This document shows positions 22,794-25,685 of a DNA stretch of 38,129 nucleotides, piece by piece. The position numbers and the translations under genes were made by a program. This DNA comes from Thecamonas trahens ATCC 50062 (lineage: Eukaryota > Protista > Apusomonadida), in NCBI RefSeq assembly GCF_000142905.1, contig NW_013657671.1:546465-584593 (forward strand). The letters run 5' to 3'. Numbering within the stretch: position 1 is the stretch's first letter; the number at the start of each line of letters is the position of its first letter. The notes beneath the pieces are model-generated. The model saw nothing but the letters and a program-made list of their open reading frames with translations. It did not search any database and was not told the DNA's origin.

Positions 22794-22865
22794 GGTTGAT
22801 CGATGTGTTATTCTGCCCTCACTGCAAGGGAGGGGGGTGCGCTCTAATAAGAGCGCAGGTTGTTG
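22794..22865 (-). promoter_or_regulatory. H2B 3' element: histone-type stem-loop plus conserved downstream block
   Basis: Minus strand reads CAACAACC-TGCGCTCT-TATT-AGAGCGCA-CCCCCCTCCCTTGCAGT-GAGGGCAGAATAACACATCGATCAACC; the stem starts 59 nt after the H2B stop. Confidence 0.85.
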
Positions 22866-22916
22866 CTTGGCTGCCTGCCTGCGAGCAGATGCTCACGGAC
22901 GGGCGAGGAGAGGCGC

Positions 22917-23239
22917 TTAGGCAGTCGAGGTGGTGTACTTGGTGACGGCCTTGGTGCCCTCGGACACGGCGTGCTTGGCGAGCTCACCGGGGAGGATGAG
23001 ACGGGCAGCGGTCTGGATTTCGCGGGAGGTGATGGTCTGCTTGCCCGAGAACTTGGCAAGGCGCGAGGCCTCGAGGGCGATCTTCTCAAAGGTGTCGTTG
23101 ACGAACGAGTTCATGATCGACATAGCGCGGCGGGACATGCCGGTGTCGGGGTGCACCTGCTTGAGCACCTTGTAGATGTACGACGAGTACGACTGCGTCG
23201 GCTTGCGACGGCGGGGGCGGACGACGACTTCTTGGCCAT
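22917..23239 (-). CDS. H2B: Histone H2B (107 aa after correcting a 1-nt deletion in a C run)
   Basis: [41 protein letters not shown]...[33 protein letters not shown]. The ATG at 23239 (MAKKSSSAP) is out of frame by one base at the G run 23213-23217. Confidence 0.96.
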
Positions 23240-23460
23240 GTTGATAGGTTGAGAGTAGTGGATGCAGACGAAAGTCGCGTCGGCGCGCGCGCTGCCGGTG
23301 CGAGGTTTTATACTTTTGGGACTGGCCGAGATATACACTTGTGCAACATGCACTACTGTGTAACTGGGACACGACCAGCACCTCAAAAACAGCCAACCTT
23401 TTCGCTCCTCCCTCTCTCGCTCCGTTCGACATACTTCATTCTCATTACCTAACAGACATA
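23240..23460. promoter_or_regulatory. Bidirectional H2B/H2A promoter region (221 nt)
   Basis: Divergent ATGs at 23239(-) and 23461(+); locally AT-richer; TATAAAA on the minus strand at 23306-23312. Confidence 0.7.
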
Positions 23461-23926
23461 ATGGCTGGCAAGGGTGGCAAGGGCAAGGGCGGCCGCGGTG
23501 GTACGGACACTTGCTGACACATCATGCCCCTCATCCCATCTCTTTTCTCCTCCTCCACTCACCATCATCTCCACGCCCACAGGCAAGTCCAAGTCGCGCA
23601 CGCGCTCCTCGCGCGCCGGGCTTCAGTTCCCGGTTGGCCGTATCCATCGGTTCCTCAAGGAGGGCCGCTACGGCAAGCGCATCGGCTCGGGTGCTCCGGT
23701 CTACCTCGCTGCTGTCCTCGAGTACCTCGCGGCCGAGATCCTCGAGCTCGCTGGCAACGCTGCCCGCGACAACCGTCGTGCGCGCATCAACCCGCGCCAC
23801 ATCCAGCTCGCCATCCGCAACGATGAGGAGCTCAACATGCTGCTCAAGGACGTCTCGATCGCCCAGGGTGGTGTCCTCCCCAACATCCACGCCGTCCTCC
23901 TCCCCAACAAGTCGAAGAAGAAGTAA
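23461..23926 (+). CDS. H2A: Histone H2A (canonical type, no SQ[ED]Y tail); join(23461..23500,23583..23926), 127 aa
   Basis: [13 protein letters not shown]|[86 protein letters not shown]; phase-1 intron GTACGG...CAG at 23501-23582. Confidence 0.97.
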
Positions 23927-23979
23927 GCAAGCTTCGCCTTTCGGCTCGCGCACGCGTGCTCTGGACCTAACACGTCCTA

Positions 23980-24050
23980 CAACAACCTGCGCTCTTCTTA
24001 GAGCGCACCCCCGTTCTCCAGCGAGGGCAGAATAACACAATCGATCAACC
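23980..24050 (+). promoter_or_regulatory. H2A 3' element: histone-type stem-loop plus conserved downstream block
   Basis: CAACAACC-TGCGCTCT-TCTT-AGAGCGCA-CCCCCGTTCTCCAGC-GAGGGCAGAATAACACAATCGATCAACC; the stem starts 61 nt after the H2A stop. Confidence 0.85.
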
Positions 24051-24203: not shown

Positions 24204-25685
24204 ATGCTGCACCTCACACGCACGATGACCTTTGCCCGCATGGCACAGCCACTGTACGTGCCCCCCCCCCCTCTTCCCGCTCTTTCCCTCTCCCCTACCC
24301 CACCGGCCACACGTCCGTGCCGCGCTCCATCGACAGCTTTTGGCGCCAAGGCCAGCTCCGGTCGCCGCTCTCACCAGCTCCCCCCTCCCCCCTCTCCGCC
24401 CCCGCGTCATCACAGGAGCATGGGCCTGCACTCGGCAGCAAGCGTGTGGAAGGGCAATGGAAAGGCCAAGGCCAAGGCAGCAGGCCAGAGCAGCAGCAAG
24501 GCGGCAGAGATGTTCGAGCCGGCTGAGCGGTCGTCCGAGGTGGAGGCGTTTTTGGCGGGAAACTTTGAGAGCTCAGCGAGCGAGGGCTCAACGAGCACGG
24601 GCTCGGCGAGCAGCGCCAAGGACGCGGGCGAGCGGTCGTTGCCGACGCCGCCGACGGCGTATGCGGCGGATCCTCCGGCCGACTACGACTATGAGCGGCC
24701 GAAGATCTCGGTGGTGGGCGTGGGCGGCGCCGGCGGCAACGCGGTCAACAACATGATCCTGTCGCAGCTAGAGGGTGTGGACTTTGTGGTGTGCAACACG
24801 GACAACCAGGCGCTGTCACAGGCGGCGACCGACGCTCGGATTCAGCTTGGATCCAAGGTGACGCGTGGGCTCGGCGCCGGCGCCAACCCGGACATCGGGC
24901 GCGAGGCCGCGCTCGAGTCAATGCCGGACATTCTGGCTGCTGTCGGCGACGCCAACATGGTGTTCATCACCGCCGGTATGGGTGGCGGAACCGGGACTGG
25001 AGCGGCGCCCGAGATTGCGCGGCACATTGCGTCGCGCGGTGTGCTGACGGTTGGCGTCGTCACCCTCCCGTTCGACTTTGAAGGCCGCAACCGGCAGCGG
25101 CTTGCGCTCGAGGGCCTGGCCAAGCTCGAGGAGTCTGTCGACACGCTCATTGTCATTCCCAACCAGAAGCTGATGACCAAGGTGACGGCACGGACATCGC
25201 TGCGCGACGCGTTTGGCCTCGCCGACTTTGTGCTGCAGGCCGGCGTGCGGTCGGTTACCGACCTCATGGTCATGCCGGGCCTCATCAACCTCGACTTTGC
25301 CGACGTCCGGGCGGTCATGTGGGAGCAGGGCCGGGCCATGATGGGCTCCGGCCAGGCGTCCGGCGAGAGCCGTGCGGTCGACGCGGCCTCGGCCGCCATC
25401 TCCAACGACTTGCTCGCCGACTCGGACCTGTCGTCGGCGTCGGGCATGCTCATCAACATCGCCGGCTCGACCGACATGACGTTGTGGGAGATCAACGAGG
25501 CCGCCAAGACCGTGCAGGAGGTCATCGCTGACGACGACGCCAACATCATCTTTGGCTCGACCTACGACGCCAACCTGCCCGAGGACACCGTCCGCGTCTC
25601 GGTCGTCGCCACCGGCATCGGCGGCCCGGTCTCGCTCAACCTCCGCTCCACCGACCAGTGGGGCAACGAGCGCGCGGCTGCGTGA
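24204..25685 (+). CDS. ftsZ: Mitochondrial-type FtsZ; probable join(24204..24253,24416..25685), with an optional micro-exon 24337..24360
   Basis: [35 protein letters not shown], tubulin signature [25 protein letters not shown]7 loop [20 protein letters not shown]...VSVVATG. The spliced N-terminus [29 protein letters not shown] is Arg-containing and acid-free, like a presequence. Confidence 0.95.

Follow-up and report, generated by a model that had tools for sequence, protein, structure and literature searches.

A divergent histone gene pair with two conserved blocks in each 3' flank

In a window of 38,129 nucleotides (nt) from the genome of Thecamonas trahens ATCC 50062 (contig NW_013657671.1, positions 546,465 to 584,593, forward strand), we analyzed a divergent pair of histone genes, H2B on the minus strand and H2A on the plus strand (positions 22917 to 23926 of the window), each of which is followed by a hairpin (block 1) and, a short distance beyond it, by a purine-rich element (block 2), an arrangement that resembles the 3'-end processing signal of animal histone pre-mRNAs. 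The H2B coding region (22917 to 23239, minus strand; stop codon, 22917 to 22919) and the H2A gene (23462 to 23926, plus strand; stop codon, 23924 to 23926) are separated by a promoter region common to both (23240 to 23461). H2A consists of exon 1 (23462 to 23501), an intron of 81 nt with a GTACGG donor and a CAG acceptor placed after codon 13 (23502 to 23582), and exon 2 (23583 to 23926); with exon 2 alone as the query, AMSG_03796 of the same strain was recovered at 100% identity.

Behind H2A, block 1 (23980 to 24012, plus strand) opens with the 5' flank CAACAACC (23980 to 23987), continues into a hairpin with an 8-bp stem and a 4-nt loop (23988 to 24007; TGCGCTCT-TCTT-AGAGCGCA as DNA, UGCGCUCU-UCUU-AGAGCGCA as RNA), and closes with CCCCC (24008 to 24012). 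The remaining 10 nt of a pyrimidine-rich spacer (GUUCUCCAGC; 24013 to 24022, plus strand) lead to block 2, the purine-rich downstream element (24023 to 24050, plus strand; GAGGGCAGAATAACACAATCGATCAACC as DNA, GAGGGCAGAAUAACACAAUCGAUCAACC as RNA). The flank of H2B, on the minus strand, is built in the same way, with block 1 at 22832 to 22865, comprising the 5' flank CAACAACC (22858 to 22865), the 8-bp stem with its 4-nt loop (22838 to 22857; UGCGCUCU-UAUU-AGAGCGCA, the loop being TATT in DNA), and CCCCCC (22832 to 22837); a pyrimidine-rich spacer, UCCCUUGCAGU, at 22821 to 22831 (minus strand), which is not conserved relative to that of H2A; and block 2, GAGGGCAGAAUAACACAUCGAUCAACC, at 22794 to 22820 (minus strand). 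In both flanks block 2 reads GAGGGCAGAAUAACACA(A)UCGAUCAACC. The stem follows the stop codon by 61 nt in H2A and 59 nt in H2B, and block 2 follows the stem by 15 and 17 nt, respectively; these positions and distances agree exactly with those reported in a first-pass annotation of the window, which had been made from its letters by themselves.

The same annotation had described the untranslated regions (UTRs) between stop codon and hairpin as unrelated in the two genes and conservation as confined to the two blocks. A segment-by-segment comparison of the H2A and H2B flanks, with shuffled sequences as controls, leads to the same view: identity is 31/53 in the UTR (shuffled mean, 29.4), 32/33 in block 1 (shuffled maximum, 24), 6/12 in the spacer (shuffled mean, 5.9), 26/27 plus one indel in block 2 (shuffled maximum, 21), and 5/13 beyond block 2 (shuffled mean, 6.4). 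That the similarity is limited to the two blocks argues against a simple homogenization of two inverted flanks.

Both blocks accompany core histone genes of all four classes and recur in a second species

Searches of the genome (28.7 Mb in 131 contigs) with the exact H2A/H2B stem recovered seven copies, all of them behind H2A (four) or H2B (three) paralogues; the copy on contig C32 reads N in its middle. A relaxed pattern covering all versions of the hairpin gave 14 matches, compared with none for a reversed-pattern control, and every one of the 14 stands behind a core histone gene (four H2A, three H2B, two H3, and five H4 genes), 53 to 61 nt after the stop codon. The element is thus not a dispersed repeat common behind nonhistone genes. 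Nor is it missing from H3 and H4 genes, which carry both blocks: the H3 flank reads CAACC-UGGUUCU-UUUU-AGAACCA-CCCCC, followed by a spacer and GGGAAACAGAAUGAACGCAACC, and the H4 flank reads CAACAACC-UGUGUUCU-UUUC-AGAACACA-CCAC, followed by a spacer and GGGCAGCAAAUGAAGAAACC.

Block 2 is present after all 14 hairpins, beginning 15 to 19 nt past the stem, with the general form GGG..CAG..AAU(G)AA. It varies in sequence, with indels, between histone classes, the versions being GGGCAGAAUAAC (H2A and H2B), GGGAAACAGAAUGAAC (H3), and GGGCAGCAAAUGAAG (H4), and in the genome each type is confined to its own genes, except for one orphan copy on contig C57 (see below). The H2A paralogue copies lose their resemblance to each other near the 3' end of block 2. 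Variant histone genes, namely, an SQEY-tailed H2A, an intron-containing H3, a second H2B, and a CenH3-like gene, have no hairpin in the 260 nt that follow the stop codon, and the block is absent from them too.

A relative of Thecamonas is represented by marine metagenome contigs that encode an identical H4 and a 96%-identical H2A. Its H2A, H2B, and H4 genes have hairpins 32 to 49 nt after the stop codon, with 7-bp stems (UGCGUCC or UGUGUCC) and the loops UCUA, UCUU, and UUUU; after the stem comes CCCCC or CACC, and a pyrimidine-rich spacer leads to GAGAU(U)AAACC(AAAGAACC). The survey of H2A, H2B, H3, and H4 flanks proposed in the first-pass annotation has thus found both blocks behind all four classes and in a relative. 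Over seven nonredundant flanks from the two species, purines make up 9 to 17% of positions +1 to +10 past the stem and 63 to 77% of positions +16 to +35. The layout of hairpin, spacer, and purine-rich block is kept across four histone classes and two species.

The hairpin family and the SLBP gene

The seven nonredundant hairpins have stems of 7 to 8 bp and the loops UCUU, UAUU, UUUU, UUUC, and UCUA. In this set 100% of the cells are paired, five of seven pairs show compensatory changes, and the observed covariation score was reached by none of 500 shuffles. At the base of the stem a U-A pair followed by a G-C pair is invariant, the latter being the second pair, and the first and third loop positions are U without exception. 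Binding of SLBP, the protein that recognizes the histone hairpin, is known to depend on a G-C second pair and on U at loop positions 1 and 3.

The Thecamonas hairpins nevertheless fall below the gathering threshold of the Rfam model Histone3 (RF00032), and their stems are longer than the 6 bp of animals. The H3 hairpin scored 21.8 bits (E = 0.032) against a gathering score of 34 bits, and the H2A and H2B hairpins of the window gave no Rfam match at the gathering threshold and none of relevance at E ≤ 10. An SLBP RNA-binding domain is encoded at G000:C29:202867-203073 (Pfam PF15247, E = 1e-24); the best matches of this candidate among solved structures are the RNA-binding domains of fly and human SLBP (E = 1e-16). 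The identification of block 1 as an SLBP-type histone hairpin, made in the first-pass annotation along with the suggestion that an SLBP gene be sought, is therefore upheld by the covariation, by the histone-only location, and by the presence of that gene in the genome.

An LSm11-like protein

A six-frame search of the genome for LSM proteins returned 13 loci. Twelve of these we take, from a comparison by eye with human sequences, to be ordinary Sm or Lsm proteins, namely, SmD2, SmD3, SmE, SmF, SmG, Lsm1, Lsm2, Lsm3, Lsm5, Lsm6, Lsm7, and Lsm8. The thirteenth (G000:C42, L079:997-1680) carries a long extension at its N terminus, and its best match among solved structures is human LSm11 as seen in U7 small nuclear ribonucleoprotein (snRNP) structures (6v4x_D and 9n96_D; E = 4e-9), in an alignment that covers the N-terminal region and extends into the Sm fold. 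When a three-sequence profile was used, the match to LSm11 improved to 1.6e-15, the next family being LSm3 at 1.3e-10. As separate SmD2 and Lsm3 genes are present, the protein is an additional Sm protein. In the relative, a 50%-identical homologue is encoded on a contig that shares its Tara sample of origin with the H4 contig.

By these comparisons the C42 gene is best described as LSm11-like, and the similarity appears to include a region resembling the N-terminal FLASH-binding part, which in human LSm11 spans residues 23 to 130 (PMC5636114). Judged from homology, it offers the strongest support for regarding block 2 as the equivalent of the animal histone downstream element (HDE). To our knowledge, LSm11 has no role outside the U7 snRNP. 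The presence of an LSm11 homologue favors common descent with the animal system over independent invention, making unlikely the alternative, raised at first, of a histone 3'-end system that evolved independently.

A candidate U7-type processing signal

Our preferred reading, in which confidence and doubt have about equal shares, is that the two blocks constitute an SLBP- and U7-type histone pre-mRNA processing signal homologous to that of animals. The block 1 hairpin would be bound by the Thecamonas SLBP, and block 2, 15 to 19 nt past the stem, would be the counterpart of the animal HDE, recognized by a particle of the U7 type with the LSm11-like protein at its center, most probably via base pairing with a small RNA. 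SLBP and this particle would position the shared CPSF73 endonuclease for a cut a few nucleotides past the stem, in the ACCCC tract, and the resulting histone mRNAs would end in the hairpin and carry no poly(A).

The likeness to the animal signal (stem-loop with SLBP, HDE with U7) extends to a hairpin with a 4-nt, U-rich loop 32 to 61 nt after the stop codon (both species taken together), an ACCC-type tract after the stem, a pyrimidine-rich spacer, a purine-rich element about 15 to 19 nt past the stem, limitation to core histone genes, and the coding of SLBP and an LSm11-like protein by the same genome. In contrast to the animal signal, the Thecamonas stem has 7 to 8 bp rather than 6 bp and is preceded by CAACAACC rather than CCAAA, block 2 has a sequence of its own, GGGCAGAAU(G)AAC, that differs from the animal HDE cores, and no U7 RNA was found in Rfam and pattern searches of Thecamonas. 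A more far-reaching claim, toward which we lean somewhat less than away, is that a working U7-type, RNA-guided histone endonuclease operates in Thecamonas, and hence did so in the ancestor of apusomonads and opisthokonts, with a guide so diverged that the Rfam U7 model would miss it and with GGGCAGAAU(G)AAC as its target.

Several results weigh against a U7-type signal. A U7 RNA would measure about 60 nt and join a 5' stretch complementary to the downstream element to a special Sm site and a 3' hairpin. The Rfam U7 model (RF00066), run on the whole genome, gave no match at E ≤ 10 (65 of 948 candidates scored), and searches for the complement of the block 2 core, AUUCUG with its flanks and with wobble pairs permitted, ahead of an Sm-like site returned matches at chance level only. 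Both kinds of search relied on the Rfam model and on sequence patterns, not on a whole-genome structural descriptor. Given the differences among the block 2 versions, a single guide could pair continuously with only 6 to 9 nt of each. Lsm10 was not among the 13 loci of the six-frame LSM search, which also missed SmB, SmD1, and Lsm4, these three probably because introns split the genes. Replication-dependent histone genes of animals are intronless, whereas the hairpin-bearing H2A gene of Thecamonas has an intron. The contigs found to encode H4 and H2A consist of metagenome DNA, none being transcript derived, and for H3 there was no record. Finally, block 2 contains hexamers close to the canonical poly(A) signal, a point taken up below. 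Of the original proposal that block 2 is an HDE equivalent read by a U7-like guide, the first part has thus gained from the HDE-like position, from the recurrence of the block behind H3 and H4 and in the relative, and from the SLBP and LSm11-like genes, while the search for a U7-like RNA complementary to block 2, by Rfam model and by patterns, yielded none.

All of the guide RNA candidates that we read from the searches for this complement lie in apparent coding sequence or lack a hairpin. Two copies of block 2 with two mismatches (G000:C66:50908 and C70:17225), one inside a 3' UTR and the other in a 5' region, are at chance level. At C31:103249, ATTCTGCCAATTTGTCCAG offers a conspicuous Sm site of the U7 kind, yet the sequence runs antisense to an open frame (..LDKLAES..), and its 19-mer also occurs in 13 unrelated metagenome contigs. 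The candidate at C63:31647 is followed by a C-rich tail with no hairpin; that at C43:172564 has both an Sm-like site and a hairpin but is antisense to an open reading frame (ORF); and those at C16:118554 and C76:36190 both resemble the antisense of coding sequence. A further segment, G000:C43:243359-243380 (TGGATACCGAATGAACGCAACC), has 14 exact bases in common with the 3' part of the H3 block. In a duplex-energy scan of about 250 kb, only the antisense strands of the blocks themselves and the orphan copy on C57 were recovered.

This orphan is a direct copy, of about 52 nt, of the H3 flank and lies about 320 nt downstream of the real one, at C57:193372-193425 (within L061, G000:C57:191534-194557). 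It extends from the stem's 3' arm to block 2, which it includes, but has neither the 5' arm nor the loop, and it probably arose by local duplication. Read on the minus strand, the copy falls together with a putative intron of 41 nt (G000:C57:193385-193425, minus strand; GTACGG donor and CAG acceptor) in a convergent gene. The RNA of this intron would match the H3 block as antisense at 21 of 22 positions, with AUUUCUCAG at its end; the genome holds no other antisense copy of any block 2. The idea that this intron supplies the guide RNA is speculative, and we consider it very improbable.

Alternative explanations for the downstream block

The alternative that survives best, though we regard it as rather unlikely, is that block 2 is a poly(A) signal, such that CPSF would read an AAUAAA-like hexamer, cleavage and polyadenylation would follow about 10 to 30 nt farther on, and the SLBP hairpin would stay inside a polyadenylated 3' UTR and serve stability or translation rather than cleavage. 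The hexamers of block 2 (AAUAAC, AAUGAA, and, in the relative, AUUAAA and GAUAAA) are one step from AAUAAA and stand 20 to 27 nt past the stem; the sole version without such a one-mismatch hexamer is that of the relative's H2A, with UGUAAA (two changes). Similarity among H2A and among H4 paralogues ends about 15 to 25 nt past the hexamer, at the point expected of a poly(A) site, and the failure of the searches to find a U7 RNA also suits this explanation. Polyadenylated histone mRNAs that keep the hairpin, and thus the coexistence of hairpin and poly(A), are described in a preprint (10.64898/2026.10.14.759114).

Against a poly(A) signal stands, first, the rarity of AAUAAA-like hexamers behind nonhistone ORFs, where they occur within 150 nt in 9 of 75 flanks, or 0.59 per kb, in what is a small and noisy sample, and where different words (ACAAAG and CACAAA) are enriched. 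In addition, the variant histone genes that lack the hairpin lack the block as well; block 2, unlike the canonical signal, is tied to the histone hairpin at a fixed distance; and conservation reaches past the hexamer, as in the conserved GGGCAG stretch on its 5' side. The LSm11-like gene, moreover, has no role that we know of other than in the U7 snRNP. Apart from the histone genes, ACAAAG, CACAAA, and CAAAGT are 5- to 7-fold overrepresented in the first 150 nt after ORF ends (about 72 nonhistone flanks from the window and other loci), and they may be part of the general 3'-end signal of the organism.

Quite improbable, in our estimate, is that block 2 is a site read by a protein, or a termination or pausing element, that acts together with SLBP and needs no guide RNA. 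Such a site would accord with the absence of a guide from the Rfam and pattern searches, and the short common core with its indels between classes suits a degenerate protein site as well as it does base pairing; however, an LSm11-like protein whose N-terminal region resembles the FLASH-binding region is encoded, and both the position and the purine richness of block 2 agree with the animal HDE. Hardly credible is the explanation of the H2A/H2B similarity as a functionless by-product of recent duplication or of gene conversion between inverted flanks, for while the two flanks are arranged as an inverted repeat with the gene pair between them, and paralogue copies differ very little, the spacer between two near-perfect blocks is at chance identity, and covarying hairpins with the block in the same place also occur in H3, in H4, and in a second species.

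Comparison with other lineages and evolutionary implications

Stem-loops with SLBP in green algae (Chlamydomonas and Volvox) and other protists offer a parallel to the signal of Thecamonas, being likewise nonanimal and combining a hairpin and SLBP with a downstream purine-rich region; Davila Lopez and Samuelsson reportedly described histone hairpins and SLBP in protists, including green algae, in 2008. Homologues of LSM10, LSM11, and FLASH have been found in green and red algae, plants, stramenopiles, unicellular holozoans, and amoebozoans (October 2026 preprint, 10.64898/2026.10.14.759114), which renders outdated the premise of the first-pass annotation that U7 and the HDE are specific to animals. 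The same preprint predicts a U7-like RNA in Rozella and reports purine-rich "HDE-like" regions outside animals, scored merely as AAA or AAGA; compared with these, the Thecamonas motif is defined, constrained in position, and common to four histone classes and two species. The text of that preprint makes no mention of apusomonads, and our literature search returned no paper combining Thecamonas, histone, and stem-loop. LSM10, LSM11, and HDE-like regions outside animals have therefore already been reported, and what is new here is the apusomonad case with a defined motif.

The value of this case lies mainly in a precise, testable handle on U7-type processing before animals. Apusomonads are the closest outgroup of animals plus fungi and their sister lineage, and the combination of hairpin, downstream element, SLBP, and LSm11-like gene would place U7-type histone processing before the origin of animals. 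With its defined place 15 to 19 nt past the stem, GGGCAGAAU(G)AAC is a concrete bait for a nonanimal U7 RNA; we know of no U7 RNA outside animals that has been shown experimentally. If an RNA-guided endonuclease does act on it, guide and target would form the first such pair to be defined for a U7-type system outside animals. Should the mRNAs instead be polyadenylated, they would provide a clear case of the mixed state of hairpin plus poly(A) that has been proposed as an evolutionary intermediate.

Other features of the locus

The H2B coding region contains an apparent 1-nt frameshift in a run of five C residues (C5; 23213 to 23217), so that its start codon and the histone fold are in different frames. 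The copy on contig C14 also has C5 at this run, whereas in L085, a metagenome contig obtained independently from the same species, the run is C6 and the ORF, of 107 amino acids, is intact; the C5 run looks like either a homopolymer error of the assembly or a genuine frameshift. Downstream, H2A is adjoined by an FtsZ-type gene, probably mitochondrial, at 24204 to 25685.

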